Below, in pieces: positions 10,125 to 64,000 of a stretch of 64,000 nt of DNA. Positions within the stretch are counted from its first letter, which is position 1, and each line of letters opens with the position of its first letter. The notes beneath the pieces are model-generated. The model saw only the letters and a list, made by a program, of their open reading frames with translations, did no database searches and was not told the DNA's origin. The position numbers and the translations under genes were made by a program. Source of the DNA: Scyliorhinus canicula (Eukaryota); NCBI RefSeq assembly GCF_902713615.1, contig NC_052159.1:109545877-109609876 (forward strand). Reading direction: 5' to 3'.

Positions 10125-13100
10125 GGGCAGGATTCTCTGATCCTGAGGCTAAGTGTTGCCACAGTCGTAAACACCATCGCGTTTCTCGACGGCGTCAACA
10201 TGCCCTCAGGAGCAGTGATTCTGACCCCTCCAGGGGGCCAGCACGGCACTGGAGTGACCCACGCTGCTCCAGCTGCCGATCCCGGCGTCAGATGGGTGCC
10301 GCGGGCTTTGCGCATGCGCAGTGGGACAGGCGCGACTGCCGTGTGATTCACTATCAATTACGACAAGACGAGTGTAATCAAGGCTTCATTACACAGAGAT
10401 GTGTAGCCTCCCACAGCTGCTGCCGAAATGGCTGCAGCTTGGAGAACCCATACATTTATACTCCGTCTCCTGGGCGGAGCCAGCAGGCAGGTATCTACCC
10501 CCGTACCTGTAGTACAGGAACCTTACCGTAATGCCAATATGTACAATATAATGTAAGTGGTGACTACCACAGTCACCCGCTGTTAAAAAAGAGTCCAGCG
10601 GGGGTGGTGGAAGACTATTTACATGCAGATGTTCAACATTTTAGGAAAAGTTTACAAATTCAGACGATCGGGTGCCTTGCTCCTTTGTTGCGAGCGCCGC
10701 AGTCCTGGTGGCGATGCAGGTGTCGGTTCGGTCGGCGGTGATTCCGGGAGCGTGTCGACCTCATCTTCATCCCTGGGTGGGGCCAACGGGAGGACGGATC
10801 GTCCTGGAGCGGGGGCTTGGTGAGATGTGCTGGGGGGAGGGAGGGTGGCGCCGGGGCGGGAGGGGGTGGACCCAACTGGGGCCAGGTCCCTGAGGGAGAC
10901 TGTGTCTTGGCGGCCGATGGGGTTCGCATGAAGTAGCTGTACCCTCTTGACCAACGGGTCCGCCTTGTGGAGCCGTACGTGCTTGCGGAGGAGAACGGGA
11001 CCCGGAGCTGCCAGCCATGTTGGGAGCGAAACCCCGGAGATGGATTTCCTGGGGAAGGCAAAGAGACGTTCATGGAGGGTTTCGTTAGTCGCAGTGCAAA
11101 GGAGCGACCGAATGGAGTGGAGGGCGTCGGGGAGAACCTCCTGCCAGCGGGAGGCTGGGAGATTCCGGGACCGTAGGGCCAGCTGGACGGCCTTTCAGAC
11201 CGTCTCATTCTCCTGCTCCATCTGCCCGTTTCCCCGGGGGTTGTAGCTGGTCATCCTGCTCGAGGCAATGCCCCTGTTGAGCAGGTACTGGCGCAGCTTA
11301 TCGCTCATAAATAAGGATCCCTGGTCGCTGTGGACATAGGCGGGGAAACCGAACAGAGTGAAGATGGTGTTGAGGGCTTTGATGACTGTGGCAGACGTCA
11401 TATAGGGACATGGGACGACGAAGGGGAATCTGGAGTATTCGTCGACCACATTAAGAAAGTATGTGTTTCGGTCGCTGGAGGGGAGGGGCGCCTTGAAATT
11501 CACGCTGAGGAGTTCAAAGGGGGGGGGGGGGGGAGGCCTTCACCAGGTGCGCTCGGTCTTGCCGGTAGAAGTGCGGTTTACACTCCGCGCAGACCTGGCA
11601 GTCTCTGGTGATAGCCCTGACTTCCTCGATGGAATAGAGCAGATTGCGGGCCTTTACAAAGTGAAACAAACGGGTGACCCCTGGGCGACAGAGATCGACG
11701 TGCAGGGTCCGGAGTTGGTCCACTTGTGCGCTGGCACATGTACCTCGGGATAGGACATCGGGGGGGCTCATTGAGCTTACCGGGGCGATACAAAATCTCA
11801 TAATTGTAGATGGAGAGCTCGATCCTCCACCTCAAGATCTTATCATTTTTGGTCTTGCCCCTTTGTGTATTGTTGGTCAGTTAGGAGAGGGAATCTCCTG
11901 CCGGCCAGGTAATGACTCCAGTGTCGCACAGCTTCTACTATGACTTGGGCCTCATTCTCGATGGAGGAGTGCCGAATTTCGGGGGTATGAAGGGTGCATG
12001 AAAACAATGCCACGGGCCTGCCTCTGATGCATCGCTCTCGACTTGGAAGGGGAGCGTCTCGTCGACCGCTTGCACCGCGGCCTTGGCGATGCCGGCCTCG
12101 ATACGGTTAAAGGCCTGGTGGTCCTCGGCCATCAGTGCGAAAACTGTGGAGTGAATGAGTGGGCGGGCCTTGTCCGGATAGTTAGGGACCCTTTGGGCGT
12201 AGTACGAGAAGAACCCCAGGCATTGTTTGAGGGCCTTGGGGCAGTGGGGAAGGGGGGAGTTCCATGAGGGGGCGCTTGCGATCAGGGTCGGGCCCTAGAA
12301 CTCCATTTAAACCACATAGCCGAGGATGGCTAATTGGTTAGTGCTGAAGACACACTTCTCCTTGTTGTAGGTTAAGTTAAGTAGTTTGGCGGTGTGGAGG
12401 ATTTGGAAGGTTAGCGTCGTGGTCCTGCTGGTCGTGGCCGCAGATGGTGATGTTATCCAGGTACGGGAAGGTGGCCCGCAGTCCGTGCCGGTCAACCATT
12501 GGGTCCATCTCCCGTTGGAAGACCAAGACCCTGTTAGTGACGCCAAATGGGACACTAAGGAAGTGGCAAAGGCGGCCGTCTGCTTCAAACGCGGCGCATG
12601 GGCGGTTCGCCTTGCAAATGGGGAGCTGGTGGTAGGCAGATTTCAGGTCCACTGTCAAGAAGACCCGGTACTGTGCAATCTGATTGACCATATCAGATAT
12701 GCGTGGAAGGGGTACACGTCGAGCTGCGTGTGCCGATTGATGGTCTGACTGTAGTTAATGACCATCCTTTCTGTCTCCCCAATTTTCACAGCTACCACTT
12801 GAGCTCTCCAGCGGCTGTTGCTGGCCTCGATAATGCCTTCCCGTAGCAGCCGCTGGACCTCAGACCTGATGAAGGTCCTGTCCTGGGCACTGACTGTATC
12901 GTCTGCTCCTGGTGGCGACGGGTTTGCAATCCTGGGTGAGGTTCGCAAACAGAGAAGGCGTGTCGATCTTAAGGGTCTTGAGACCGCAGACAATAAGGGG
13001 TGGTAGGGATCCGGCAAATTTCAGGGTTAGGCTCTGGAGGTTGCACTGGAAGTCCAGGCCGAGTAGCAAGGCAGCGCAGAGGTTGGGTAGGCCGTAGAGC

Positions 13101-14973
13101 CGGAAGCCGCTGACCTCTACACCCTGGATGGTGAGGGTGGTGGTGCAGTACCCCGGATCGCCATGGAGTGTGATCCGGAGGCCAGGGAGATTTTCTGGTT
13201 AATGGGGTGTACCGTGAGGGAGCAGCGCCTTACCGTATCGGTGTGGATGAAGCTCTCAGTGCTCCCAGAGTCCAGAAGGCATGATGTCTCTTGCCCATCA
13301 ACCTTTATTGTCGTTGACGCGGTCGCGAGGTTGTGCAGTCGGGACTGGTCGATCGTGATGGAGGCGAGTCGTGGCTGGTGTTGGAAGGCCCCTGGCTGGA
13401 CGGCGGTGGTTGCAGGCAGTGAGTGGCCCGATGAGGTGCCCGACGAGCAGGGGTCCTGGGTCGGGGAAGATGGCGGCACCCACGGGGCGCACGTGGCGGG
13501 TGCCATTGAAGATGGTGAAGTCCACGGGCCGCACGTGCCCTGAGGCAAACAAGATGGCGGCACCCACAGGCCGCACGTGTTGTGAGACGAGCAAGATGAC
13601 GGCGCCCATGGGCCGCACGTGGTCTGAGGCGAGGAAGATGGCTGCGCCCACGGGTCGCATGTGGGAGGTGCAGGGACAATAGCGGCGATCGAGCGGACCT
13701 GTTCGCTGGCGGGGTCCATGATGCCCAGGAGGGGTGGGCCGTGCAGTCGGGGGCGTGCGCCTGTACATTGCGGGAGGCAACTATTAGTGAGATCGCGAGT
13801 TTCTTGGTCGCCGCGAGGTCGAGGGTAGCCCCTTCTAAGAGGCGCTGGGGGATGTAAGCTGACCTTTTGCCTGTAACGAAAGCGTCTCTAATTAGAAGTT
13901 CAGAATGTTCAACGGCCGAAACGGCCTGGCAATCGCAGTCCCTCGCCAGGGCATGCCAGAAATCTTCCACGGACTCACTTGATGCCGCGTGGACAGGAGG
14001 TGCCTGGCGTAGATTTTGTTGGGTCTGCTGAGTGTAGTTCTCCTTCAGTAGCGCCATGGCCTCAGCGTAGGTAGGTGCATCCCGGATGAGGGGAAAGATA
14101 TCAGAGCTCAGCCGCGTGTACAGGATCTGGAGCTTCTGTCCCTCTGAGGGTGGTTCTGTCGCACATCCGATGTAGGCTTCGAAGCAAGCTAGCCAATGTG
14201 CGAAGGCCGACTTGGCGTTATCTGCTTGAGGGGGCAGCTGCAGGCGATCAGGCTTGATGCGGAGATCCATCATTGTAAAATCTCTGCGTAATAAATTAAT
14301 GTACTATCAATTACGACGAGACAAGAGTAGAGTGTAATCGAGGCTTTATTGGGCAGAGATGTGTAGCCTCCCACTGCTGCTGCTGAAATGGCTGCAGCTC
14401 GGAGAGCCCACACATTTATACTCCGCCTACTGGACGGAGCCAACAGGCAAGGATCTACCCCGTACCTGTAGTATAGGAGCCTTACCGTAATACAACAGTA
14501 GTGACTAACACACCACGCATGCGCGGTGGCTCCGTTCTCCACGCCGGCCCTGACACAAGATGGCATAGGGCTACAGGGGCCGGCACGGAACAAAAGAGGC
14601 ACCCAGTCCGAGAGGCCAGCCTGCTGATTGGTAGGCCCCGATCGCGGCCAGGCCACAGCGGAGGCCCCCCCTGGGGTCGGAGATCCCTCCCCCACAAAAA
14701 GGCCTCCCCCAGATGCATCCATGTCAATGTTCCGTGGGGTAAGAGCAGGTGTGGACTGCGCCTGCGGGGCTCAGCTTTTGTGCGTGACCGCTCGGCCCAT
14801 CCTGGGCCGAGAATCGCCGGGGGAGCCCCATAGAGCTGCCCCCGACTAGCCCCGCCGATGCCAATGGCGCCGGTTCTCTGTGCTCCGGAGAATCAGCGGA
14901 CCGGCATCTGGGCAGCGTGGCGCGATTCGCGTCGGTCCCGCCGATTCTCCGGCCTGGTGTGAGAATCCCGCCC
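10125..14973. mobile_element. PIF/Harbinger MITE (TSD ATA) split by a Gypsy insertion
   Basis: ATA-GGGCAGGATTCTC ... GAGAATCCCGCCC-ATA. Confidence 0.8.
10344..14512 (-). mobile_element. Ty3/Gypsy LTR retrotransposon A, full-length but frameshifted (LTRs 10344-10571 and 14297-14512)
   Basis: gag MDLRIKPDRL.. (14273), PR LLDSGS, RT VDLKSAYHQ..PFGV..YLDN, RNase H ESDAS, IN CQVC..FKAPLP..HSDQG..GNGQME. Flanks CCGTG/CCACG. Confidence 0.9.
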
Positions 14974-18080: not shown

Positions 18081-20327
18081 TCTGGGAATGTAACTCTTAT
18101 CCCCAGCCCTGCAATCACTAAGGTCCTTCAAAAACGTGGAACACCTGGAAGTGGTTCAAAATGCAGGAATTGTGAGAGCTCCCTGGGGACTGAGCAGAAA
18201 AATGCAGGACATCTCAGCTGCATGTTCAAAGAGTAGAAAACTTTCCTGTTGATGAATGTGACCAGCTATTGCCAGGGAGCTCTCAAAGCCACATGTATGC
18301 AATTAGTGGCCCCTTGCACTTACAGAAAACCTAGCCTGATGCTCTTGCAAGGATCCAAGTTGGATTTGACAAATTCTTAACTTCTCTTGAACATGGCATC
18401 CATGATCTCCCAGAAACACTTGTCTATCACTGACTGAGAAATGAAAGACAGGCTAAGGATTGCCTCCAAGTCCGAGATTCCCATAATTCAACATGACTTG
18501 TTTCTCCAATGGATCAATCCACATTCTGTTTCATTTGCTTTCTATTGTCTGTACTTCCTACTGCTCCGGTATTCCCAGACATTTCCTACCAAGTGCTGAT
18601 TAGGCCTTATTCCATTTAGCATATTGGATTCACCAATATAATACTTATTCATTGTTACTTGGTCAGGAGAGATGGCAATGCTGGTATGATCAGATTTGTT
18701 GTCCATCCCTGGTTGACCCAAAACAGTTGTGGTGGATCATCTCCCCGAATGGGCAGATCGTCTCCTGGTGGTGTTCCAACAGTGGTGTTAGACAGGGATT
18801 TACACGATCTGACCCAATGTCATTGCCCAGTAATATTGAATATTGAGAAGGTTTTAAAATGTATTGCTCCAGTCTAACTTTTGACAATACAGTAATACAA
18901 TCAAATAAGTCTGAAGACTGGAACGTATTATGAGATGACATTTCTCAAATGAATATTCAACTCCAGATTAAACAGATGCATTTTCTGCTCATTATGTCCT
19001 TTTCAGCTGCTTCCTCTATTCCCCCCGATGCACCTTTTGACACTCTCCATTTCCAGCCTACTATTGGCTCTATGCTTTCTAGTTTTACTCCCCTGCCTGC
19101 GCGCTGTTGATCAAAAGACTATGTTGCTCATTTTCTAATTCACAGTTATTACTCCCAGTTGGCAATTTAATGACAGCAGTTCATGCCACCCACCATACAC
19201 TGATCCATATTCAACATTTTCCAAAACAGTAAATGCAGGTTATAAATGGACAGAATATATTGCATTAACACAACACATGCAAGACACAGACAAACTTAAT
19301 AATATATATGTAAAATCCAAAAGCACTAAGACAAGGTTCACAAATCTCAGTTACTGCAGATGGCATTAGTGTTTGTACTTCATGTCATGTTGTTGTTCAA
19401 TTTTCATTAAACTACAGTCATGTTATATAATCTATCTGTCAATAATGATTATCATTGTTTATTAACAGACCGATTTCACTGCACAAATTATAACTGCAAA
19501 ATGCTTTGTGGTGATTGTCCCTTTAAGGGCAACACAACAGAAAAAGATCACCTGGCTTGGGGGACCAATTGTGATTCTGAGTCGGGATTCTGAGGTGGTG
19601 GGGAGGGGGGGGGGGGGGGGTGGGGGTGGGGGGGTAAAGTCCCCTTATGCAGGAGATGTGTGGGGAGTTAGCTACAGCCTTGTGGCTACTAAACAATTTT
19701 TATTAATAAATACCTTTTGTGTTCATTAATGGAATCTCTGAAAGTGCATCTTTACATCTGGCGATGAGGATAAATTCTCATGAAGTTGCCCCTGGCCCAA
19801 CACCTTTGAGTCTCCTGTTTTAATGTAATCTAAAAGAAATACTCCCCAGAATGCCTATTTTTGGGTGAATTGACCCATTTGAGATATTGCCAGACCTGAG
19901 AAATGTAGAATCAGACAAGATGTGTGAGCAAGGAGGCGAGCATGGCAAGACCCCTGGGTTAAAATCAACAGGAAGGGTTGTTAAATGCAGAAATGTACCT
20001 CCGCATGCATTGTAGATGGGATGTGACCAAGAAAGCTCAGTGCATTAGAAAGGCTGAGGGACAGAAGCAGAACAAATCTGAGTTGGCTGGCAGTCAACAG
20101 ATTATAAAACGTAGAGTGAAAAAAAAGAGAAAAGAGTCCTACAAACTATGGCTTAATCAAATTTAAGTTCCAAAAAACAGAGTTGCTGCAGAGATTTTTT
20201 TTTAAAGAGCAAGCAGGAAGGAGTGCTTTAAGTAAGAGAAATGCTCCAAGTGAACTGCAGTGAGGTGACTCAAAGTGCAGGAAAATCAAAAAGCTGAGTA
20301 ACAGGCTCCCAATGTGCGGGATCCGAA

Positions 20328-21119: not shown

Positions 21120-21600
21120 CCCAGATAGAGATCAACTTGCAAGAAGTCAATAAACAATAAAGGTCTAAAGGAAGATGAAATGTAAGGCCTCAGAGGAGAC
21201 AATAAAGACCTCATGGGAGGGGCAAGGAAATACTTCAAAGTGGGAATAGAGAGGGCAATAGAAGATCCCAGGAAGTGTGCATAGGACCCCAGAAGGAGGA
21301 CAATGAAAGACCCAGAAAAGGGGCAATGAAAGACCCCAGAAAAAGGACAATGAAAGACCTAAGAAGGGCAATGAAAGACCCCAGAAAAAGGACAATTAAA
21401 GACCTAAGAAGGGCAATGAAAGACCCCACAAGGACAGCACCCAAAACCCTTAGAAGGAAGGCAATAAAAGACCCCAAAAGAAGGGCAAAAAGTACCCCAA
21501 AAGGAGAGAAATGGAAAACCTCAGTAGGAGGGCAATGGAATAGCCCAGAAGGAGGCAATGAAAGACCCAGAAAAAGGGCAACAAAAGATACTCAATGGTG
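21120..21600. repeat. Degenerate ~21-bp minisatellite (AGAAGGGCAATGAAAGACCCC)n inside the LTR element
   Basis: Many imperfect copies; produces the repetitive ORF ..AMKDPRKRTMKDLRR.. Confidence 0.85.
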
Positions 21601-29304: not shown

Positions 29305-32300
29305 GAACAAAGAACGAAGAACAAAGAAAAGTACAGCACAGGAACAGGCCCTTCTGCCCTCCAAGCCTGTGCCGACCATGCTGCCCGTCTAAACTAAAAT
29401 CTTCGACACTTCCTGGGTCCGTATCCCTCTATTCCCATCCTATTCATGTATTTGTCAAGGTGGCCCTTAAATGTCACTATTGTCCCTGCTTCCATCACCT
29501 CCTCCAGCAGCAAGTTCCAGGCACCCACTACCCTCTGTGTAAATAAACTTGCCTCGTACATCTCCTCTAAACCTTGCCCCTCGCACCTTAAACCTATGGC
29601 CCCTAGTAATTAACCCCTCTACCCTGGGAAAAAGCCTCTGACTATCCACTCTGTCTATGCCCCTCATAATTTTGTAGACCTCCATCAGGTCGCCCCACAA
29701 CCTCCGTCGTTCCAGTGAGAACAAACCGAGTTTATTCAACCGCTCCTCATAGCTAATGCTCTCCATACCAGGCAACATCCTGGTAAATCTCTTCTGCACC
29801 CTCTCTAAGGCTCCACATCCTTCTGGTAGTGTGGTGATCAGAATTGAACACTATACTCCAAATGAGGCCTAACTAAGGTTCCATACAGCTGCAACATGAC
29901 TTGCCAATTCTTATACTCAATGCCTTGGCTAATGAAGGCAAGCATGCCGTATGCCTTCTTGACTACCTTCTCCACCTGTGTTGCCCCTTTCAGTAACCTG
30001 TGGACCTGTACACCTAGATCTCTCTGACTTTCAATACTCTTGAGAGTTCTACCATTCACTGTATATTCCCTACCTGCATTAGACCTTCCAAAATGCATTA
30101 TCTCACATCATGTTCTATAATAGTGTAGAGGGAATTTAGAGGGGTTTCACAGCACGGCGCAACACCGAGGGCTGAAGGGCCTGTACTGCACTGTAATGTT
30201 CTATGTTCTATGTTCTATTTGTCCGGATTAAACTCCATCTGCCATTTCTCTGCCCAAGTCTCCAAACGATCTAAATCCTGCTGTATCCTCTGACAGTCCT
30301 CATCACTATCCGCAATTGCACCGACCTTTGTGGCGTCTTCAAACTTACTAATCAGACCAGTTACATTTTCCTCCAAATCATTTATATATACTGCGAACAG
30401 CAAAGGTCCCAGCACTGATCCCTGCGGAACACCACTAGTCACAGCCCTCCAATTAGAAAAGCACCCTTCCATTGTTACTGTCTGCCTTCTATGACCAGTT
30501 CTGTATCCATCTTGTATGAGGGGCCAGTTCTGTATCCACCTTGCCAGCTCACCCCTGATCCCGTGTGACTTCACCTTTTGTACCAGTCTACCATGAGGGA
30601 CCTTGTCAAAGGCCTTACTGAAGTCCATATAGACAACATCCACTGCCCTACTTGCATCAATCATCTTTATGACCTCGTTGAAAAACTCTATCAAGTTAGT
30701 GAGACACGACCTCCCCTTCACAAAACCATGCTGCTTCTCACTAATACGTCCATTTGCTTCCAAATGGGAGTAGATCCTGTCTCAAAGAATTCTCTGCAGT
30801 AATTTCCCTACCACTGACGTAAGGCTCACCGGCCTGTAGTTCCTTGGATTATCCTTGCTACCCTTCTTAAACAAAGGAACAACATTGGCTATTCTCCAAT
30901 CCTCCGGGACATCACCTGAAGACAGTGAGGATCCAAAGATTACTGTCAAAGCCTCAGCAATTTCTTCTCCAGCCTCCTTCAGTATTCTGGGGTAGATCCC
31001 ATCCGACCCTGGGGACTTATCTACCGTAATATTTTTCAAGACACCCAACACCTCGTCTTTTTGAATCTCAATGTGACCCAGGCTATCTACACACCCTTCT
31101 CCAGACTCAACATCCACCAATTCCTTCTCTTTGGTGAATACTGATGCAAAGTATTCATTTAGTACCTCGCCCATTTCCTCTGGTTCCACACATAGATTCC
31201 CTTGCCTATCCTTCAGTGGGCCAACCCTTTCCCTGACTAGCCTCTTGCATTTTATGTACGTGTAAAAAGCCTTGGGATTTTCCTGAACCCTGTTTGCCAA
31301 TGACTTTTCGTGACCTCTTCCAGCCCTCCTGACTCCTTGCTTAAGTTTGTTCCTACTTTCCTTATATTCCACAAAAGCTTCATCAGTTCCCAGCCGTCTA
31401 GCCCTGACAAATGCTTCCTTTTTCATTTTGGCATGGGCTACAATATCTCTTGTTGTCCAAGGTTCCCGAAATTTGCCGTATTTATCCTTCTTCCGCACAG
31501 GAACATGCCAGTCCTGAATTCCTTCCACTGTTCCCGAAATGCTCCCCTACTGAAACTTCGACCACCTAGCCGGGCTCATTCCCCAATACCAGGTCCAGTA
31601 CAGCCCCTTCCCTATTAGAACAGAGAACATAGAACATAGAACACTACAGCGCAGTACAGGCCCTTCGGCCCTCGATGTTGCGCCGACCTGTGAAACCATC
31701 TGAAGCCTATCTGACCTACACTATTCCATTTTCATCCATATGTCTATCCAGTGACCACTTAAATGCCCTTAAAGTTGGCGAGTCTACTACTGTTGCAGGC
31801 AGGGTGTTCCACACCCCTACTACTCTCTGAGTAAAGAAACTGCCTCTGACATCTGTCCTATATCTCTCACCCCTCAATTTAAAGCTATATTGTTTTAAGA
31901 AGCCCTCCTGGATGCTCCTTACAAACTCTGCCCCGTCCAAGCCCCCAGCACTAAGTGAGTCCCAATCAATATTGGGGAAGTTGAAGTCTCCCATCACAAC
32001 CACACTGTTGGTTTTACTCATTTCCAAAATCTGTCTACCTATCTGCTCCTCTATCTCCCGCTGGCTGTTGGGAGGCCTGTAGTAAACCCCCAACATTGTG
32101 ACTGCTCCCTTCTTATTCCTGATCTCTACCCATGTAGCCTCGCTGCCCTCTGACGTGTCCTCCCGTAGTACAGCTGTGATATTCTCCCTAACAAGTAGCG
32201 CAACTCTGCCACCCCTTTTACATCCCCCTCTATCCCGCCTGAAACATCTAAATCCTGGAACTTTTAGCTGCCAATCCTGTCCTTCCCTCAACTAGGTCTC

Positions 32301-53226: not shown

Positions 53227-55119
53227 CTCTGAGAAATGAGCAGCCTTCCTGAAGCTCACAGAGAGTACATCACACAGGAGTGAAAGGAAGCATATGAGAA
53301 TGACTTGATAGTTGTACAAGGGATTCACTTGGGTATGAGTTGGAATGTTTAAGGCATTGTGTGTATGTTTATCGAAATGAATCGTGTACTTCATTTGAAT
53401 TCTTCTGGTCTTTACTTTGTTGCATTCCAAATTTCAAGTCGGCAGTAGTCTTCAGGTGAACAGTTTGGATGATGAGATGTAATGATTCAAATTTTGACCG
53501 TGGGAATAATTTGTATTGGGAGTTTTGAGCACCACAGGATTCATGGTCTCACTACTACATGGTCTCAGATTAGCTGTAGCATGCCTGTATGAGGTGACCA
53601 TGGGCTGCTTTAACAGCCAGGTGAGTGGCTTTAGGCATCTGGATGCTACAACTCCTCCTATTCCTCCATGGATATTGAGCACTCTACACCTTCCTCTTTT
53701 GCATCTCCACTCAACTCTACAGCATGATGTTGTGCAATTACCGTTCTCAAGCCCCTTGCATCCTGAAGAACACTCCCGCCCCAGATCTGTCCAGATACCT
53801 AAATTGCACCATCACCTACCCATGACTTGCTCAACAATCATTCTTGCGGAGACTTGTTTGGTACCTTTCTTCAGCATCAGTGTTAGGGCTCCTTACAGTG
53901 TTCAGTGTCATCAGTCAGATCAAAGAGTTCCCCCTGTCTCCAAGGAGCCATTCACTCACATTGTTTGAAGCAGCAAAAACCCTGTGGGAGATGTAACTGT
54001 GAAGGTATCATGGCAGCTTCTGGGATATCCTGCACAGAAATGCATGAAGACTTCTTGAGCTCACACACCAGCTGATTCTAAATGGCAAATACTCCAGGTT
54101 GACTGGAAGGTGTCTGGATGGCCATTCAGGGCTGTGGTAGAAACTACCGATGCTGTCGGTATTGGTGTTGCAGCTCCCGATGCCATGCTCCAGGTGTAGG
54201 AGCTGTTCCCGTGCTGAAATGAAGGCTTACAGCAGCGAAGTTCAGATCAAGGTGGGTAAAGTCCAAGGTAGGTGAATTAACTCCCAAAAAGTTGGAAGTC
54301 ACTTCAGAACAGTGAAATCTGTCTCTTAGAACAAGTGCTGTGAGTCAAATCCATTCACAAAGGCATTGATTTGCCAACTGTGATTAAATGTATTCCTAGG
54401 GGTTTCATCACATGGCTTGCTCCCAAGCTCAGCCATTTGTCAGCCAACACATCCACCCTTGTGACACTCTTCCTTCCTAGGCCAATCAGAAAGCAAAAAG
54501 ACTCATTACCAATTGGATGCTTGACGTCAGTTATAGAGCCTTCTTATCCCTATTTTCACTATTTTAATCTCTGGTAAAGAGAAATGATCAATGAACATTT
54601 TTTAACAATCCATCTTTTTTGTTGGCCTGATGCTTTTCACTCGGATTATGCATGGCGGTTTCCTGGAGATTGATCTTGAATTCCTGTTGCCTGCAGGCCA
54701 ATTCTGGAGGGTTGGCAACCCTCCAAAGGCAGGCCCAGAAATGTGAAATTTACTGTTTGAAGGCTTTTCAAGTCCATCAGTTTCATCAGTCAATTAATGC
54801 TCACTGTGCTCTCACCTTGCTGACCCTTGTAAGTTCCACAGAGCTCAGCAAACCTGTGCACCAGCTGTTAAAAGCAGAATTCTGGGTTAATGACTCAACT
54901 AATTAATTCATTAAATATTTAAGTGACTGACCCAATAACTCCACAGGGTTTCATGCTCAACCTTCAAACGTGCCCCAGTTAAACCTGGTAGTGGGTGGGA
55001 TCATGTCAGGTTCCTGAGCCACCACAGGTGTTGGGGAAATTAGCACCCCACATCCCGAACTATGGGGTCCACACCCCCCCCCCCCCCTTCCCCCCCCTCC
55101 CCCCCCCCCCAACCAAGAA

Positions 55120-55340
55120 GACCACTATCATTACGGTGCCAAAGATGAAGCAGGCAACGTGCCTCAATGTCTACCGCCTGGTGACCTCGACATCTATCAT
55201 TGTGAAGTTTTTTGAGAGTTGATCATGAGACACATCAACTCCATACTTCCAGAATGCCTTGATCTATTGCACTTCACATACCACTTCAACCGGTCCACAG
55301 CAGACGCTATCTCCCTGGCCCTACACTCATCCCTGGAGCT
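55120..55340 (+). mobile_element. Rex1/Babar-type LINE RT fragment; target of the ERV insertion
   Basis: Decayed translation TIITVPK..TCLNVYRLV.TSIIVKFFE / LDLLHFTYHFNRSTADAISLALHSSLE, cut exactly at the LTR start. Confidence 0.75.
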
Positions 55341-56924
55341 TGTTTTTCTAATTTCACCTATATGTTTTAGAATTCCCCTTATACCACAGACCTTAAGGGC
55401 CAATATTCTAAAACGGCGAACAGGGAACTCCCTCCCTGACTCCAGTACAGGCCTCTGTGAGTGCTATTCGGGTCAAACTCTCCTTTCAAGTTATCCCCCG
55501 GTATACTCATACCTTCACTGAAGAATTTTACTTACTTACCCCTTAATCGCATCGATGTCCCGGGTCCTGCGTTCTTAAGGAAGTGAAGTAAGCTAATAAC
55601 CACTTTTTCAGGTTAAATTATTTTATTATTAACATACTCTTTTTTATCTCATTAAATTAAAAACATTATTTACTTTTTGATGTTGTCTGGTTGGTTGGTG
55701 AGGCCTTCAGACTCTCTCTCTCTCTCTTTCACTTTCAAGTCTCCTGGTCATCTCTCCTGGTGCAGTTTTCTCTTTTTCTCCTCTTCTTCCTTCATTGGCT
55801 GCTGGGCCGCTTCTCTCCTGGGCCTTCCCGTTCCTGGGCCGCTGCTCCTGCTGTCCTTCTTCCTTCTTCGGGTGCCGCTGGTGTTCTGCTCCTGGTGTTC
55901 TGTGGCGTGGTTCCTTTTGTGCCTCTCTTCTTGCCTCATGGGGAGAGAGGAGGAGTCTGAAGCCCGCGCTGTTTTCTTTGTTCCAGCTGTTCTGGAAGCC
56001 CGCGCTGGCTGATCTCTGGCTCGAGATCGGGACCTCCGATAAGGATCGGACTTCGGGTCTTAAAGGGGCAGTCCATCACCATTTTCCAACAACACAAAGA
56101 GATTTTTAAAAACTTTTTTCTTTTGCCTTTCTCCTGCTGCAGGTTGTAATAACCATTCTGATAGACTGAAATTGCTGCCCACAGTTTCTGTGCCCTTCAG
56201 CTGCCACCAACCTCTTGTGGGATCTTTCCCTGCACTCTCCCCGATCAGATGTTGGCAGACCTCTATGTTTCAAATGACACATTCTGTATTTTCCAGAACA
56301 CCCCGTCTTGACATTTGAAACATTACTATAATTTGGTTTATTGTCCCCCCCATCCAATTGTACTAACCTACATCCCTGATCATTGTCATTTGTATGCATA
56401 TCACAGACCAGTGTCAATACGAGTCTTGTTTTCCGTTCCAGATTGGAATGTGGTAATTGTGATATCTTGTACCCCCCACTGATCCCCTAGTCTTATTAAT
56501 TTAAAATGTTCAATTGATCCTGCTTGTATTCCTAACTTCCCCATTAATGTCTAACATTGTCGTGAATCATGTAAGTCTGCCAACCCCTGGTTTACATGAG
56601 AGAACATCTTTCTGACAACGTGTATATTTTTCATTTCAGCATTTACAAAACCGCATTGAACCGTCTCTTTTTTTTTCTTCCCAAACAAATTCTCCCTATT
56701 GTTCTATACATAGTAAAATTTTTATCTTATCTTAACACCTTATTCATTACCTAACCAATAGACTGTGTGTTACACTTTACATATTTTCAACTGTTAACAA
56801 TTTAATATCAATATCGAAACATCGCTTCTTGGCTTTTGGAACAATCATTATTACATACTAAACTAACCCTCTATTAAAACATTCACAGTTTAGAAATGCG
56901 GATCAAGTTATTTAACGACACACA
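55341..56924 (-). repeat. 3' LTR of the foamy-like ERV (~1584 bp, TG...CA)
   Basis: 55341-55678 equals 63662-64000 except for a 1-nt indel. The U3 boundary is inferred from the minus-strand PPT GAGAAGGGGGG-TA-TGTGTG at 56937-56919. Minus-strand AATAAA at 55627-55622. Confidence 0.75.
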
Positions 56925-56937
56925 TACCCCCCTTCTC
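56925..56937 (-). promoter_or_regulatory. Polypurine tract of the ERV
   Basis: Minus strand GAGAAGGGGGG-TA followed by TG, downstream of pol. Confidence 0.7.
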
Positions 56938-57369
56938 ATATATATACAACAGTCCCTATCAATTTACATGAAAATAAAAAAAATTTTCTTATCAACGATT
57001 ATAGCTCTTCAATGCAATATTGTTTTGTTGCATTGGTAACAATTTTCCCGCCGTAGTATCAAGCTACTGAAATTCTTAACCTATTATCATTGATCATATT
57101 GGGGTTCCTCGTCAGTCGCTGCTATCTGCTGCCGAGACCTTAATGATTCCACTGCGTAGTACATACCCCATGGAGACCACAGATCATCCATCAACTAATG
57201 TCCAGTTAGAGATGTCTGACCGGGGGTTTCACTGTCCAGTTATAATTTGATATTCTAATTTGTTTCTAACCCGTAAAGTTTTCCTCCGGGTTCTGTCATT
57301 TAATTCCCTCAAATTTGTAGCCAATTATATCATTAGTTTCCCCCCAATCCTGTCGAACAGATTCTTCTC

Positions 57370-57451
57370 TGGAGTGTAGTTCTCTTCCTTCTTGCGAACT
57401 GGTTTGTTATTGGAGTGTAGTTCTCTTCCTTCTTGCGACCTGGTTTGTTAT
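57370..57451. repeat. 41-bp tandem duplication between pol and the 3' LTR
   Basis: TGGAGTGTAGTTCTCTTCCTTCTTGCGA(A/C)CTGGTTTGTTAT twice, one mismatch. Confidence 0.95.
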
Positions 57452-57657
57452 TAATTTTTTCCACCTGAAAAAGCAAATGAACAGATCAAGGGTGGAGAGG
57501 GCCCTATTCTTTAATTCGGATTATCCCAGAAGTGCCCTCTCCAGGACTTCCGGATTCCTTTTGCCATCATTTCTTTTTGAACTGGTTTATATTCCATATC
57601 CTTGATGTAGTCAAGCCTCCTTCTGTCATTGCACCCCTGAGTGAGATTCGAAGAATC

Positions 57658-60600
57658 TCAAACTCCTCTGATGCTCACTGGGTCGTGTGTTTCAAGCGTG
57701 ACACAATTTCTTTTGCTCCAGACACCATGCTTCTCTAATTCAATTGTATGTGTACCCAGAATCTGAACAATCTTGTCTTTACATTTTACAGTCTCGCGAA
57801 TGATTTCCCCCGCAGTCTTAGTTGGTAACTTCACCCAAACTTCGTCTCCTACTTGATAATTCCCAGATTCACTTGGGTCTCCTTGTCCCTGGGGGACAGA
57901 GGTTCCAAGATTGCTATTAAGATCAAATACTATTCTTTCAATGTCTTTATCCCAGCCTTTATTATTCTGATTCTTTATGATCCAATCCTTTACTTTTCTT
58001 ACAGACCTCTCAGCCATTCCATTACTCTCAGGTGCATATTTCACGGCCCAATTGATTGTTATTCCTCTGTCAGCACAAAAGTTAATAACAGTATTGTTTC
58101 TAAAGTGTGGCGCGTTGTCCATTCGGATCGATTCTGGTCTACCTCTGGAGGTCATCATTTCTGCCAATACCCTTTTGGTTGTGGCTCCATTTGCTTTGCT
58201 GGTTGCTCTAAGGTCAATTTCTCCCGTGCAGCTATCAGCTTTGACTAAAAAATACAAATTACCTTTGCTGCTTCTGGGAAAAAGTGGTCCTGCATAATCT
58301 AATGACCATTCCTGCATCGGTTTCTCAGTTTTTATGCTCCCATATGTTTTATTTCCTCTCTGTCCTCCACAGGCCATACATCTCTCACATTTTCTCCTTA
58401 CTGCAGTTAAATGTTGTCTCCAATAGGCTATTTTAAGTCCCAACTTCTTCAACTCCCTTGCGACTACAACATGACCCCCATGTCCCGTGGCTTCATGTAC
58501 TTGCTTAATTATCATTTGATGGTCGGCTGCTGAGTTCCCAAGAGTCCCCAAGATTATTGTCCTAAGTCTGGCTAATTCATCCACTTCCTGATTCCCCTTA
58601 CACAGTTCCCCAATTCCTTTTGTGTGTGCTTTTTGATGAATTGTCTGGATCTCCATATCGGCTAAAATTTTATCTATCTCTTCCCACTGTTCTTTCTGTT
58701 CCAGTAGTTTATTTCTACCGTTCGTCCAACCGTTTAGTTTCCAAAACTCCAAATCTTTCTCCAATCCTTGCTGCACGAAAAAGCTATCGGTTACAACGGT
58801 AACTTCCTGCAGCTTTCGCTGGTGACACTCCTTTAACCCTTGCAATACTCCCTCTACCTCAGCTGTCTGAGCTGATCCAATGATTATTCCCTGTTCCTCC
58901 ACTACTATGTTTCCTGAATTTTTTAAAATGAATGCCCATCTGGCTTGTTCTTCGTCCTTCTTGACTTTACTACCATCAGTATATAATACCCAAGCATTCA
59001 CCAACTCCGTTTTACTAACTGGCTCATCAAGTTTCTGTCCCTTTTGAATGTTATGAACAAACATTAAGTCAGGGTTTAGAAGAATGGTTTCCCATCTTTC
59101 CCATCGAGCTGTATTCGCGCCTTGCTGGCAAATCTGTCTCTTGGTTAGCTCCTTTAACTCCAAAAACTCAGTTGTGACATAAATTTTCTTACCACCCGAC
59201 AAGTTTTCTATCTCTGCTATTCTCTTTGTTATAGCTGCTAGACATTTCTCGATGTTTGAAAACTTTTGTTCAGCTCTCGACCAGTTTCCTGTCAGATGTT
59301 TGATAGGTGTCTGATTGCTAAGATTAGCAAGTACCATACCATATCCATTTTTATATATGTCTAATTTAATGCTTAAATCATCCTCTTCTTGTCTCCCAAC
59401 TAATGACCCCGATATCGCAATTGCTGTCTTTAACTGATCTAACCCTCTCTGGGCCTCGCTGGTCCAAATAAAATCCCCTTTCAAGGTTTGATAAATGGCT
59501 TTAGCATAGAGACTGAAGTCCTTCACTACTGGCCTTAGATATCCCAACATTCCCATTATTTTTTGAACCCCTTTTTTCGAAACCGGCGCAGTAATTTCAG
59601 CTATCTTCTTCCTCATTTCAATACTGGCCTCTCTACCTTCCTTCGATACTGAATAACCCAAATAGTTGACTTCGCTTCTCCCAATTTGACATTTCTTTAG
59701 CCCTATTTTAAAGCCTGCTTCACCAAGTGTCTTAATGATCCTGGCCACTCTTTCCACATGTTTGTCCTGATCGTCATCTCCAATTAATATATCATCGATA
59801 TATACTAAGGCCAAATCATCTTGAATCAGCTCCCTGATTATTGCCTGAAAGTGATTTGGAGAATTAACATATCCCTGTGGAAGTCTACAATATACATAAT
59901 GCTTAGTTCCAACGGTGAATGCTGTTTTTTCCCTGCTGTCTGGGTCTAATGGAACACTCCAGAATCCATTCGCCAAATCTATACTAGTTAAGTAAGTTTT
60001 TCCCGCGACTTGCTCTAAGGTAGCTTGTGGATTTATTAAATATCTCTTGTCCTTCTTTGTGACTTTATTTAAAGCTTTGTAATTTGTTACCATTCTAAAT
60101 GTACCATCTGGTTTTCTTACTACCTGAAGTGGACTATTTGTTGAGGCATATGTGACCCCTTGAATAATCCCCTGCTGCTCCAATTCCTTGATTATTATCT
60201 CCAGCTCGCTCTTAGCTCCTCTAGGCAAAGGATACTGTTTTTGAGGTCTGTGTTGTCCCCCGTGAATTGTGTGTTGAAATTGCTGGCTAAGCAAACCTGT
60301 GTCATTCTTACCTATCGCTAGGTTTGCTCCCATCAGTACTTCTTCCATCTTCTTCCAAGCTTCGTCATTTAAAATACTTTTCTCTTTCTGTTTCCTTATT
60401 TCCTCCATGTTATCAATTGGTTTTAATATCCTTATTTTTCCAGTATCTATTTTTATTAAATCTTTCCCTGCCATCAGATTATCAGTTCCTGATATTGCCA
60501 GTAATTCTCCCAATCTAACTTCTGGTCTAATATCCTTATTCCCTAATGCTCCTTCTACTATGTAATTCTTTCCTGTCGGATTTCCAGCTTCTTCCCTTAT

Positions 60601-62946
60601 CATTGATATCTCAGCCCCTGTGTCCACTATACATCTTTCCCCCTTGTATACTACTACTAATTCTCCTTTGTCTGTTTCTGTTGTTAGATTTTGTATAGCC
60701 TGTTTAAGGGGAGAAGCCGAATCCTGTCCATATATACCGGGGCCTCCTCTGCCTCCTCCTCGGAATCCCCCTCGCGAGCGTCCCGGATACCCTTCTGATG
60801 GTTGATATCTACCTTGCTCAATCCTCCCCTGACCAGCTGCTCTTCTTCTCCTATCCTCAATGAATCTGTCTCTTTCCTCCCGACTGAGGGCTAGGAATTG
60901 TCCCCTTGGTAAATAATCTAGATTTTGTGGTGGAGGTGGCCCTTGTGATCGCAAATTATACCCATGTTGTGGCATTGCTGGTTGTGCTGGATTTTGTTCC
61001 GATTTGTCAGGTATCTGTCGGTTTGGTGGTCTAATCTGAGCATTTTGTGTTGAAACATTATTTTGGGCAGCTGCTCTTTTTTGTTCCCCTTTTGTGTGTT
61101 TATCCTTAAATGCTTTGCCTGCCAAATCAAATTTAACCAGTTCTCTTCCTATTTCTCTTCTAGAGGTCGTTAACAGTATTATTGAGAGGCTTTTTCCTCC
61201 TGGAATCTTGGGTCCTAATTCCCTCAGGAATCTGACTACATCGACCCCCTCTTCCTTATTAACCTCATATATTCGGTCGATATATGGTGTGAGGTGTTCC
61301 CCTGCATATGCTGCCTCTGTCATCTCTTTCATTAAATTAGCTCTCTCATTTCCCAAATCTAACTCACTTATTAAATCTGAGACTTCGCCTGTAACTATTT
61401 CTCCCACTGTATGTAAATCAATTAATTTGGTGGATTCTCCTGATGCCCCCATTTTCTTCGCTAACTGTTTTAACCTCTGTGAATACTCAATTCTACTCTC
61501 CCCATGTTTCTTTGGGCCTGCTGTCTTCATTACGGCTGCTACTATTTTATACGGTACCATGCCTCCCTGTCCTTCCTCTGGACCTGGTGTAAATGACTGA
61601 ACTATTTTCTCACTTCTGGGGCATGGTGTTCTTAAAGGGGCACCTCTATCTGGGTCCCTATATTCGGAGAAATGTATCCGTCGTCGTACCGGTTCTTCCT
61701 CAAAATAGGGGGTACTATGTTGTGCAAACTCTTCCACCGATTCTATATATTCTTCAAACCTTGCACTTGGTACTTGGCTATCTCGTGGAGCATAACTTGC
61801 CCTATCCATTGGAGTAGGAGCAGTTTTTTGGGGTCTTGGACGATTCTGTATCCTTTCCTGTGGTCTTAATGCTGCTATTATCTGGCCTTGTGTTTCTGTG
61901 CTGTTCCTTACCCTACTCATGGCTCTTCCGAAACTGTCATACCCTTTGCTCATTTGCCAAATTTTAGCTTTGGGGGTAACGTTTGGTAATTCTAGTAATT
62001 TCGTAGAATCAATTTGTTGACTTCCTCCTAATATTTCTCCTATTTTAAGTCCCCTAGCTGTAACCTCTCTTTCCCATCCTTCCTGATCTCTATGGTGTAC
62101 CATTTCTGCTTCTGGATTATAAATATAATACGGTACATCCTTATTTACTGGTCGATAAGAGGAAGGTTGTTGTTGTTTCCAGTGATCGCTATAATCCCCT
62201 ATTTCTAATGGTTTAGAATTTTTTCTATTCCCTATTCCTCTCTTTTGTTTGACTATTTCCTCATTCTCGGATGAGGATGATAATTCTTCCTGTCCCATCA
62301 CAGGAGGCGCCATAATCCCAACTATGCCTTGTTCCTCTTCACTTTCTTGTGGTTCAAAGAAATGATCGATAAACGCTTCTTTCTTATGTGTGGCAGATTG
62401 CTGAGGCCAATTTTCTTCCTGAAACAGACTTGGCTCTGGGTATTGAAAATTGTATCCCGTTGGGAAATTTTCACAGGGGTCCGAATTCTCTCGGCTATCT
62501 GATTCTAGGCCTGATTCCTCGTCACTTTCCATTTCTAATGGTTCATTTTTCTGCAGTTGTTTTATATATTTGCCTACCACTTCAGAGTTACTTTTGGGTT
62601 TACTAGGGATCTGTATTATTTCTGTCCTGTTTACTCCGTCAATGATTTTAATCAGTTTGGAACACACTTTGCCCACTTGAGCAGCTGCATGCTTCTGTCT
62701 GTGTCCAAATACGATTAGTGATTCAGCTCGCTTTTCAAATGCAAACTGACAAAGTGCTTTAAGGACCCTGACTGAATCTGTATATTGCAGGGCTTTTGGC
62801 ACTCTAACAAAGAGGGAGATATCTCCGTCTGGATACATATCTCCTGTCCAGGATTTCTTTTGCTCTTTTAATTTCTTCCATTCCCTTTTCATTTCTACAT
62901 TTCTCTTGACCGTATCCCAGGGCATGAGAATTACCCTAATTGCCAT
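57658..62946 (-). CDS. gag-pol: Gag-Pro-Pol polyprotein (1762 aa): Gag ~62946-60690, PR ~60670-60440, RT ~60300-59400, tether, RNase H ~58990-58565, integrase ~58530-57658
   Basis: The ORF track starts at a GTG (62991); the first ATG is at 62946 in Kozak context AAAATGG. Motifs: PR VDTGAE (60616-60624); RT IDLANGFW (~59959-59982), LPQGYVNSP and YIDD (59791-59802); RNase H YTDGS, AQTAE, TDSFFV, GNQEVD; IN H-x4-H...CERC, LDYAGP, MDNAPHF, NGMAER. No internal stop or frameshift. Confidence 0.95.
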   Translation of the reverse strand: MAIRVILMPWDTVKRNVEMKREWKKLKEQKKSWTGDMYPDGDISLFVRVPKALQYTDSVRVLKALCQFAFEKRAESLIVFGHRQKHAAAQVGKVCSKLIKIIDGVNRTEIIQIPSKPKSNSEVVGKYIKQLQKNEPLEMESDEESGLESDSRENSDPCENFPTGYNFQYPEPSLFQEENWPQQSATHKKEAFIDHFFEPQESEEEQGIVGIMAPPVMGQEELSSSSENEEIVKQKRGIGNRKNSKPLEIGDYSDHWKQQQPSSYRPVNKDVPYYIYNPEAEMVHHRDQEGWEREVTARGLKIGEILGGSQQIDSTKLLELPNVTPKAKIWQMSKGYDSFGRAMSRVRNSTETQGQIIAALRPQERIQNRPRPQKTAPTPMDRASYAPRDSQVPSARFEEYIESVEEFAQHSTPYFEEEPVRRRIHFSEYRDPDRGAPLRTPCPRSEKIVQSFTPGPEEGQGGMVPYKIVAAVMKTAGPKKHGESRIEYSQRLKQLAKKMGASGESTKLIDLHTVGEIVTGEVSDLISELDLGNERANLMKEMTEAAYAGEHLTPYIDRIYEVNKEEGVDVVRFLRELGPKIPGGKSLSIILLTTSRREIGRELVKFDLAGKAFKDKHTKGEQKRAAAQNNVSTQNAQIRPPNRQIPDKSEQNPAQPAMPQHGYNLRSQGPPPPQNLDYLPRGQFLALSREERDRFIEDRRRRAAGQGRIEQGRYQPSEGYPGRSRGGFRGGGRGGPGIYGQDSASPLKQAIQNLTTETDKGELVVVYKGERCIVDTGAEISMIREEAGNPTGKNYIVEGALGNKDIRPEVRLGELLAISGTDNLMAGKDLIKIDTGKIRILKPIDNMEEIRKQKEKSILNDEAWKKMEEVLMGANLAIGKNDTGLLSQQFQHTIHGGQHRPQKQYPLPRGAKSELEIIIKELEQQGIIQGVTYASTNSPLQVVRKPDGTFRMVTNYKALNKVTKKDKRYLINPQATLEQVAGKTYLTSIDLANGFWSVPLDPDSREKTAFTVGTKHYVYCRLPQGYVNSPNHFQAIIRELIQDDLALVYIDDILIGDDDQDKHVERVARIIKTLGEAGFKIGLKKCQIGRSEVNYLGYSVSKEGREASIEMRKKIAEITAPVSKKGVQKIMGMLGYLRPVVKDFSLYAKAIYQTLKGDFIWTSEAQRGLDQLKTAIAISGSLVGRQEEDDLSIKLDIYKNGYGMVLANLSNQTPIKHLTGNWSRAEQKFSNIEKCLAAITKRIAEIENLSGGKKIYVTTEFLELKELTKRQICQQGANTARWERWETILLNPDLMFVHNIQKGQKLDEPVSKTELVNAWVLYTDGSKVKKDEEQARWAFILKNSGNIVVEEQGIIIGSAQTAEVEGVLQGLKECHQRKLQEVTVVTDSFFVQQGLEKDLEFWKLNGWTNGRNKLLEQKEQWEEIDKILADMEIQTIHQKAHTKGIGELCKGNQEVDELARLRTIILGTLGNSAADHQMIIKQVHEATGHGGHVVVARELKKLGLKIAYWRQHLTAVRRKCERCMACGGQRGNKTYGSIKTEKPMQEWSLDYAGPLFPRSSKGNLYFLVKADSCTGEIDLRATSKANGATTKRVLAEMMTSRGRPESIRMDNAPHFRNNTVINFCADRGITINWAVKYAPESNGMAERSVRKVKDWIIKNQNNKGWDKDIERIVFDLNSNLGTSVPQGQGDPSESGNYQVGDEVWVKLPTKTAGEIIRETVKCKDKIVQILGTHTIELEKHGVWSKRNCVTLETHDPVSIRGV

Positions 62947-63372
62947 TTTCGGATTTTTAGTTCTGTTCCTGGTTGTCCCTTTCAGGTGCACTCTGAAATT
63001 AAGGATAAGTACCCTTTCTGGGCCCTATCCAAGGCTGACCAAGGCACTATCTTCCTGCTCTAGTTAAGGGTCGATTGATTATTGGTTTCTGAATATAAGC
63101 GTCCCTATTTTCCAGAAAATGTCCGCACAATCCGCCTTACTCTGAGGATGATTTATTCTTTAGCCCCTTTTACCAGTAATGGATGCAAGATTTTAGTGCT
63201 ATCACCAAAATGTCTTGCAGACTTTTTCTCAGGGTCAGTATCTTCTAGTCTACTGATTTTCACACCCAACCTGAGCTTCAGTCCCCTCGATCCACAGAAT
63301 ATCCTTACAAAAGCCAATCACACCTGACTTTCCAAACTAAACTCGGCAGGTAAAGTTTGACTCACACATAGA

Positions 63373-63642
63373 CTAGAAACTTCTAATATTCTAGCCTTTT
63401 TGCCGGTTAGAAACTTCTAATATTCCACCCGTTTCTTGGGAACTAGAAACTTCTAATATTCTAGCCCCTACTCTGCTTAACTAGAAACTTCTAATATTCT
63501 AGCCTCGCTTTACCTAGAAACTTCTAATATTCTAGGCTTTTCTTGGGAACTAGAAACTTCTAATATTCTAGCCCCTACTCTGCTTAACTAGAAACTTCTA
63601 ATATTCTAGCCTCGCTTTACCTAGAAACTTCTAATATTCTAG
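63373..63642. repeat. Leader array: 8 x 22-nt CTAGAAACTTCTAATATTCTAG with 11-16-nt spacers
   Basis: Units start at 63373, 63407 (variant), 63443, 63481, 63514, 63550, 63588 and 63621. Units 3-5 recur as units 6-8 with a 107-bp period. Confidence 0.97.
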
Positions 63643-63661
63643 GCCTCCACGCTGGGCGCCA
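63643..63661 (-). promoter_or_regulatory. Primer-binding site, tRNA-Lys1,2-like
   Basis: Minus strand reads TGGCGCCCAGCGTGGAGGC versus the Lys1,2 PBS TGGCGCCCAACGTGGGGC (one G.U pair, one bulged A). Confidence 0.85.
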
Positions 63662-64000
63662 TGTTTTTCTAATTTCACCTATATGTTTTAGAATTCCCCT
63701 TATACCACAGACCTTAAGGGCCAATATTCTAAAACGGCGAACAGGGAACTCCCTCCCTGACTCCAGTACAGGCCTCTGTGAGTGCTATTCGGGTCAAACT
63801 CTCCTTTCAAGTTATCCCCCGGTATAACTCATACCTTCACTGAAGAATTTTACTTACTTACCCCTTAATCGCATCGATGTCCCGGGTCCTGCGTTCTTAA
63901 GGAAGTGAAGTAAGCTAATAACCACTTTTTCAGGTTAAATTATTTTATTATTAACATACTCTTTTTTATCTCATTAAATTAAAAACATTATTTACTTTTT
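63662..64000 (-). repeat. 5' LTR (U5 and part of R) of the foamy-like ERV, truncated by the window
   Basis: Direct repeat of 55341-55678; ends ...AAAAACA immediately before the PBS on the minus strand. Confidence 0.92.

Follow-up and report, generated by a model that had tools for sequence, protein, structure and literature searches.

An array of eight candidate RNA stem-loops beside the primer binding site of a young foamy-virus-like endogenous retrovirus in the shark Scyliorhinus canicula

What would a run of nearly identical hairpin-forming repeats, separated by spacers that do not resemble one another, be doing immediately after the primer binding site (PBS) of a shark retrovirus? The question is raised by a stretch of 64,000 nucleotides from Scyliorhinus canicula (contig NC_052159.1, positions 109,545,877 to 109,609,876, assembly GCF_902713615.1), which we refer to as the window and which contains no N bases. 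Close to its end, at 63373-63642, eight units of 22 nt lie in the leader of a young, env-less, foamy-virus-like endogenous retrovirus (ERV) of ~9.3 kb that occupies the minus strand. We tentatively read them as a sense-strand array of RNA stem-loops, expanded by strand transfer, that would be multivalent for the RGG-type Gag protein of the element and/or would link two genomes, and we give this reading a little less than an even chance of being correct.

The anatomy of the array is clear. The initial annotation described eight 22-mers with a 6-bp stem and a 10-nt loop, spacers of variable length and a 107-bp duplication, all of which were confirmed with Tandem Repeats Finder, a repeat search and shuffled sequences. 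The 22-mer CTAGAAACTTCTAATATTCTAG (plus strand) has eight occurrences at ≤3 mismatches, all inside 63373-63642, where shuffles lead one to expect 0.00; seven of the eight units are exact, and the copy at 63407-63428 carries three mismatches. The parts of the array, with units numbered in RNA order, are as follows.

63373-63642, minus strand: stem-loop array of eight 22-nt units (Tandem Repeats Finder, repeat search, 22-mer match count)
63642-63621, minus strand: unit 1
63609-63588, minus strand: unit 2
63571-63550, minus strand: unit 3
63535-63514, minus strand: unit 4
63502-63481, minus strand: unit 5
63464-63443, minus strand: unit 6
63428-63407, minus strand: unit 7, the variant
63394-63373, minus strand: unit 8
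63408-63514 and 63515-63621, minus strand: two full copies of a 107-bp higher-order unit, 96% identical (Tandem Repeats Finder, period 107)

Each 107-bp copy holds three units and three spacer types. In RNA order the spacers measure 11, 16, 14, 11, 16, 14 and 12 nt, the repeat search returns start-to-start spacings of 34, 36, 38, 33, 36, 38 and 33 in plus-strand order, and Tandem Repeats Finder reports a period of 38 with 7.8 copies together with a period of 107 with 2.5 copies (93% matches, score 463). The mutual likeness of the four spacer types is not above that of their own shuffles (P = 0.06-0.88). The units consist of 6-bp self-complementary ends around a 10-nt loop, with the loop and the upper stem invariant in 8/8 units, as had been noted for the loop; CUAG closes both arms in every canonical unit, and each unit includes three UAG and two UAGAA motifs. 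For the variant unit, said at the outset still to pair, this holds in part: it forms only five contiguous pairs, and a single G/A mismatch separates these from three flanking pairs. Scans of metagenome and viral contigs with the 22-mer gave 0 matches.

Folding behavior differs strongly between the two strands. In genomic sense the array folds at -101.4 kcal/mol (z = -5.5), and the centroid retains every one of the eight hairpins; the antisense strand reaches -68.5 kcal/mol (z = -2.2). This contrast, together with the position of the array, bears out the claim of a leader stem-loop array following the PBS of a minus-strand provirus. When the stems are extended through their flanks they reach 8-10 bp on minus-strand RNA versus 6-7 bp on the plus strand, and the energies of single-unit hairpins run from -7.0 to -11.3 kcal/mol in sense and from -3.6 to -7.0 kcal/mol in antisense. 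Within the 821-nt leader the pair probabilities of the seven canonical units lie between 0.58 and 0.97, and the two outermost pairs of the variant unit are at 0.00 and 0.39. We considered a classical kissing-loop dimer site and rejected it, the 10-nt loop having no palindrome of its own.

The flanks of the units carry the covariation signal. Pairs were counted over the eight units, which amount to six distinct rows, and in sense RNA the two pairs flanking the stem are formed in all six: the first is G-U in four rows and G-C in two, the second G-U in three, C-G in two and G-C in one. On this strand 85% of cells are paired (0/500 shuffles reach that) with a covariation score of 0.253 (reached by 3/500), versions in which the 3' partners are slid along score far lower than the real pairing, and RNAalifold independently arrives at the same 8-bp stem. 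Plus-strand RNA loses the flanking pairs in three to four of the six rows, and the covariation score drops to 0.067, which 128/500 shuffles reach. The pair counts and RNAalifold thus agree with the earlier observation that the flanks pair on the minus strand through G-U pairs that would fail on the plus strand, and we regard covariation among these paralogous rows as suggestive support for sense-RNA hairpins, not as proof of them.

A related family sequence adds evidence from beyond this one locus. ERV-Spuma.0-Sca is a foamy-like family of S. canicula with 293 elements, placed in the foamy-virus clade (PMC10699275), and its sequence as seen in part is 9220 bp long, with the long terminal repeat (LTR) at 8352-9220 (869 bp) and open reading frames (ORFs) at 1538-3796 and 3920-6865 (PMC10699275). 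The window element, at ~9.3 kb, is of similar size and has one unbroken gag-pro-pol ORF in place of the two in the consensus; in the visible lines of the published sequence the LTR, leader, array and start of gag match it at roughly 95%, and the two appear to belong to the same family. The text of the ERV-Spuma.0-Sca paper (PMC10699275) makes no mention of the leader, PBS or array. The visible part of its leader nonetheless carries the same eight-unit array after the PBS, with units and spacer types in the same order, so that absence from sister copies, named in the initial annotation as grounds for abandoning the idea, is not what we found.

The differences between the two arrays, compared by eye over the visible bases, are informative. 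The first spacer of the family sequence is 4 nt and the second 1 nt shorter than in the window, and a single flank base is changed. At position 1 of the variant unit the family sequence has U and the window G, so the visible family unit has U1-A22 in place of the canonical C1-G22, with both sides changed and the pair kept, and it also has a G3-U20 pair that is possible in sense RNA only. It follows from the U1-A22 pair, as far as the published lines can be read, that the G/A mismatch of the window is private to this copy or its subfamily. In the visible lines we counted one difference in 137 unit bases, three events in 65 spacer bases and ~7 differences in 150 adjacent leader bases, which gives a Fisher's P of 0.056, and of 0.017 when the canonical units are taken alone. 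At 63572-63620 of the window the higher-order copies share their first and second spacers, and those of the first copy in the visible family sequence are shorter. This contrast in spacer length hints at ongoing homogenization or turnover, or at errors in the consensus or in the capture of its text.

The host of the array can be laid out in detail. Besides the array, the provirus comprises the following parts.

55341-56300, minus strand: 3' LTR, U5 end at 55341, identity with the 5' LTR proven for 55341-55678 only
56301-57657, minus strand: noncoding internal region from the pol stop to the 3' LTR, short ORFs only
57658-62946, minus strand: gag-pro-pol, one unbroken ORF of 1762 codons from the ATG at 62946 to the stop at 57658-57660
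58030-58326, minus strand: integrase core, within gag-pro-pol
58567-58995, minus strand: RNase H, within gag-pro-pol
59650-60120, minus strand: reverse transcriptase, within gag-pro-pol
60613-60624, minus strand: protease DTGA, within gag-pro-pol
60742-60774, minus strand: RGG box, within gag-pro-pol
62947-63372, minus strand: 5' untranslated region (UTR) outside the array, to the gag ATG
63644-63661, minus strand: PBS of 18 nt, read from the sequence, beginning TGG right after the LTR terminal CA (63662)
63662-64000, minus strand: U5-proximal part of the 5' LTR, cut by the window end, a direct repeat of 55341-55678

The 339 bases of 63662-64000 are identical to 55341-55678 except for one indel, and LTRs this similar indicate a young insertion, which makes the divergence of the spacers older than the insertion itself. 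The upstream edge of the 3' LTR is placed near 56292-56300, with TG at 56300, and the first visible line of the published ERV-Spuma.0-Sca sequence maps to ~56291; judged by that sequence the LTR would measure ~960 bp here and the 5' copy would extend past the end of the window. A single C (63643) stands between the PBS and the first unit in RNA sense, so the unit is adjacent to the PBS as first described, and strict abutment has to be given up. ARAGORN found no tRNA gene in the window. Most fish foamy-like ERVs prime with tRNA-Lys (PMC5210030), and the first eight PBS bases are common to the window element and to a relative in the fish Coilia grayii that we describe below (L001, PBS at 9584). 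No other copies or fragments of the element were found in the window by blastn or tblastn. A C-rich run (poly-C broken by T or A) lies at 55068-55112, ~230 bp beyond the 3' end of the element.

The coding region identifies the element as foamy-like, a class III ERV akin to the Spumaretrovirinae. The gag-pro-pol frame is open from 62991 to 57658 with 0 stops and 0 frameshifts, and it matches RVT_1, RNase_H, rve and RT_RNaseH_2 (the RNase H-like tether) in Pfam. In a phmmer search of PDB the top matches are foamy-virus protease-reverse transcriptase (1.9e-81 and 2.8e-78) and prototype foamy virus integrase (2e-14), compared with 2.8e-43 for Ty3 and 2.8e-29 for the reverse transcriptase of murine leukemia virus (MLV). 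Gag has no match in Pfam or, by sequence, in PDB; a search for the CCHC (Cys-His knuckle) pattern found none, and three RGG repeats occupy residues 725-735 of 1762, some 40 residues ahead of the protease. By its sequence this is a foamy-type Gag, without a zinc knuckle and with a Gly-Arg-rich motif predicted to bind nucleic acid. Other foamy traits are missing, namely separate expression of Pol (gag-pro-pol is continuous) and the env and accessory genes: 56301-57657 contains no env-like or accessory ORF, and the longest ORF there has no Pfam match. The element is thus a gag-pol-only derivative of a foamy-like retrovirus. A second tandem repeat follows the pol stop at 57354-57452 (41 bp x 2.4, 88% matches) and is purine-rich on the minus strand, with AAGAAGGAAGAGAA present twice.

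Protein searches place the closest relatives among catsharks. An exhaustive HMMER search found the nearest proteins in S. torazame (P0042 and P0056, 87-89% identity), and a search with Gag gave as nearest two proteins of S. canicula (P0198 and P0199, 81-84% identity); word-index protein searches had returned distant Ty3/gypsy-like matches only. No protein record matches the window protein exactly, and a Gag-based scan of metagenome contigs returned no relative.

The leader has the properties of a scanned 5' UTR. Its 712 nt from PBS to gag ATG contain one ATG where 15.7 are expected, and the part outside the array (62947-63372) contains one where 8.8 are expected (P = 0.0008), a depletion indicating that the leader is a transcribed, ribosome-scanned 5' UTR and that the array lies inside such an RNA. 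Scanning would not be stopped by hairpins as weak as these (-7 to -11 kcal/mol), and the array is therefore compatible with translation. The sole upstream ATGs in 62947-63662 are found at the LTR/PBS junction (63662) and just past the array (63369), and both start very short ORFs that end in UAG.

How widely does this arrangement occur? The most instructive relative is a ~16.8-kb provirus of Coilia grayii (L001, CM090581.1, 8384-25166), apparently very young: its two LTRs of 1200 bp are 100% identical, and it has a 2206-aa gag-pol ORF whose Pol is 33% identical to that of the window. Its PBS runs into a 57-bp x 2.2 repeat whose units start with the last 9 PBS bases and each fold into a hairpin, with CUAG...CUAG closing it and 10 nt in the loop. 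The two proviruses thus have in common a tandem hairpin repeat at the PBS, CUAG closure, a 10-nt loop, young age and a gag-pol fusion ORF; the Coilia repeat differs in having 2.2 copies, a long AU-rich stem, no contrast between units and spacers and an unrelated sequence. In this provirus the edge of the PBS would be the place where the repeat was born, most simply via mis-annealing during strand transfer. The same origin does not carry over to the spacers of the window, whose likeness to the PBS is not significant (P ≥ 0.22); a derivation from the PBS 3' end is not supported for them. The gag coding part of the Coilia provirus also contains a 102-bp x 2 tandem repeat (10735-10938).

We also examined a post-PBS array as a general trait of foamy-like ERVs and rejected it, four families with readable leaders having none. 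One of the elements without a leader array, L004 of Coilia grayii (CM090594.1), has LTRs that are 100% identical, and each of these 813-bp LTRs contains a perfect 71-bp x 2 duplication (5276-5420 and 20138-20282) that may be a promoter or enhancer block. Two contigs from ENA metagenome assemblies, one of them from TARA Oceans (L002, 1-15402, and L003), hold a retrovirus-like genome of complex type in which every ORF is open: a 1387-aa gag-like ORF with a weak Macro domain match, a 1033-aa Pol (31% identity to that of the window) and three further ORFs of 514, 1088 and 472 aa. This Pol sequence recurs across several contigs and samples.

Taken together, we hypothesize that the array is a cis-acting RNA module of the provirus. 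In genomic-sense RNA, the 22-nt unit and its two flanking pairs would form a stem of 8-10 bp closed by an invariant loop of 10 nt. Units would have multiplied through strand-transfer or template-switching errors beside the PBS during reverse transcription, and selection would then have kept the units identical as the spacers drifted. One RNA would in this way present many equivalent sites for the RGG-box Gag of the element itself or, alternatively, sites for RNA-RNA linkage of two genomes, and either role would make the array a counterpart of foamy CAS-I and of the dimerization site in the foamy 5' leader. Functions in Gag binding, packaging and dimerization are suggested by the position of the array and by the foamy-type RGG Gag: foamy Gag contacts nucleic acid via sequences rich in Gly and Arg, CAS-I is an element of the 5' UTR (PMC7828637), and the foamy SII dimerization palindrome, with a CUAG center, lies in the 5' leader region (PMC5874298). 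Like retroviral leader elements, the array occupies a position between PBS and gag and has a stable structure with covariation, here in one array and one consensus. Identical units among unrelated spacers suggest that selection acted on the 22-mer over the lineage's history of replication, because homology-driven template switching copies whole periods and cannot make new spacers. The array itself probably originated by errors of strand transfer; abnormal strand transfer is also held responsible for the tandem repeats that are common in untranslated stretches of LTR elements (PMC7004042). Slippage of reverse transcriptase, proposed in the initial annotation, would be a plausible form of this, with the Coilia unit that starts inside the PBS speaking for it and the lack of PBS likeness in the window spacers speaking against it.

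A bolder version of this hypothesis, which we consider rather unlikely, is that the array is a natural, selection-kept multimer of one protein-binding hairpin, the counterpart of engineered MS2-type arrays, that would allow specific, high-avidity capture of the element's own RNA despite a low-specificity RGG box and has its copy number tuned by strand-transfer errors at the PBS. If true, one would have a simple modular signal on which to study how foamy-type Gag achieves specific packaging, a matter that has long been ill-defined.

Several points weigh against an RNA module of this kind. An Rfam cmscan of 54500-64000 on both strands returned 0 matches at E ≤ 1. The covariation comes from six distinct paralogous units of one array plus one family consensus, and the shuffle counts are not probabilities, as the pair-count tool itself warns. 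ERV-Spuma.0-Sca is its authors' consensus, with ~30 of every 40 bases visible. The loop is not self-complementary except for an AU-only AAUAUU that straddles stem and loop, and a gain of -9.1 kcal/mol on cofolding is what the energy model may assign to hairpin arrays in general. Invariance of the full stem and loop is equally expected of a DNA site, and there is no leader array in L004, in L005/L007 of Scortum barcoo, in L006 or in L002/L003.

Another reading is that the units act in DNA, each bound by a host transcription or chromatin factor, with the array as an enhancer, an insulator or a heat-shock/STAT-type element downstream of the promoter. The entire 22-mer, loop included, is invariant, site arrays typically combine a conserved core with variable spacers, the position after the PBS is that of the array in gypsy, and the initial annotation was right that every unit contains GAAnnTTC (8x in the array) and that two spacers contain TTC-N4-GAA. 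The heat-shock part of that proposal did not hold, however, since no unit has the three alternating GAA/TTC pentamers that a heat-shock element requires, and the trimeric forms GAAnnTTCnnGAA and TTCnnGAAnnTTC both have 0 occurrences. The distance between half-sites is 10 bp, units spaced by 33, 36 and 38 bp keep no helical phase, and the covarying flanks and the change from A-U to G-U in the variant unit fit sense-strand RNA only. We consider a DNA-site array unlikely.

Lower still is the probability we attach to a neutral by-product of strand transfer or slippage near the PBS, a leader minisatellite whose units would be alike through recent duplication and template switching and which would be tolerated owing to the flexibility of leaders. 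The 96% identity of the 107-bp copies shows that part of the array is young, untranslated stretches of LTR elements commonly contain tandem repeats (PMC7004042), the zebrafish retrovirus ZFERV has a 517-bp region of nine direct repeats without known role (PMC3382231), the lengths of the first two spacers differ from those visible in ERV-Spuma.0-Sca in a way that implies turnover, and the array is missing from most related families. Yet the spacer types cannot be aligned and the units are identical, a contrast that template switching, unable to create new spacers, does not produce; changes in and beside the units preserve pairing; and the eight-unit layout is common to a family sequence that differs by ~5% elsewhere in the visible leader. 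We find it just as improbable that the hairpins serve a host factor, either for nuclear export or stability of unspliced RNA, in the manner of constitutive transport elements, or as a scanning brake that balances translation against encapsidation. The evidence for RNA is here identical to that for a Gag-binding or genome-linking array, and the three UAG and two UAGAA motifs per unit, the ATG-depleted leader, which implies scanning through the array, and the weakness of the hairpins, which is compatible with translation, would all suit such a role. Against it, no Rfam transport element or other family was matched, known transport elements lie mostly near the 3' end, and nothing links the loop to a known host protein.

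Part of the background to this locus is established, namely the element family (PMC10699275), tandem leader repeats as in ZFERV and gypsy, and structured leader signals in general. What is new is the alternation of identical short hairpins with unrelated spacers straight after the PBS of a shark foamy-like ERV and the strand-specific covariation that backs leader hairpins. Genome selection by a foamy-type Gag without zinc knuckles is poorly understood, and a leader with eight stem-loops offers a clean, countable candidate signal; as the element is young and catshark genomes carry it in the hundreds, the conservation, copy number and covariation of this signal are measurable from sequence. The stretch adjacent to the PBS also emerges as a hot spot of repeat formation in two distant fish foamy-like lineages. 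Should the array prove neutral or a DNA site, it would still be useful as a marker of ERV-Spuma-Sca subfamilies.

Other features of the window lie well away from the provirus. A decayed non-LTR retrotransposon occupies 30215-32291 on the minus strand (RVT_1, 5e-21, and Exo_endo_phos_2, an AP-type endonuclease, 9e-8, matched by separate ORF fragments), and around it, at 28-40 kb, GC skew is strongly negative. The host DNA also contains a pair of minisatellites, at 21285-21588 and 13467-13663, one purine-rich, with a 24/45-bp repeat and situated where AT skew is 0.40, and the other GC-rich, with a 42-bp repeat that falls within overlapping long ORFs (13117-14273) without a Pfam match.

How does the array compare with known systems of similar appearance? 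CRISPR arrays are prokaryotic; their repeats measure 23-47 nt, their spacers are unique and similar in length (~21-72 nt), and cas genes usually accompany them. The description "CRISPR-looking" is apt for the layout, in which partly palindromic repeats alternate with dissimilar spacers; as an identification we rejected it, since the units are 22 nt, the spacers are unequal (11-16 nt) with three of them duplicated, the setting is a vertebrate provirus without cas genes, and nothing in the array suggests acquisition of foreign DNA. The 5' UTR of the Drosophila element gypsy contains, just past the PBS, the Su(Hw) insulator array of a dozen short conserved cores with variable spacers. That array works at the DNA level through a zinc-finger protein, with cores that form no hairpins, whereas the strand-specific G-U pairs of the window array point to RNA. 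ZFERV of zebrafish carries nine consecutive direct repeats over 517 bp outside LTRs and genes (PMC3382231), and in this it resembles the window element with its eight units. It differs in its period of ~57 bp, in belonging to a different retroviral class and in having no reported layout of hairpins with variable spacers. Shen and Steiner, in 2004, reportedly placed this repeat region between the 5' LTR and gag. A further parallel is foamy CAS-I/SII, a likeness that we draw from position, virus type and the printed motif and not as a claim of sequence homology: both are elements of the 5' leader upstream of gag with a CUAG-centered self-complementary motif, which in the foamy leader forms the single SII palindrome and in the window is divided between the arms of a hairpin that recurs eight times with spacers between.

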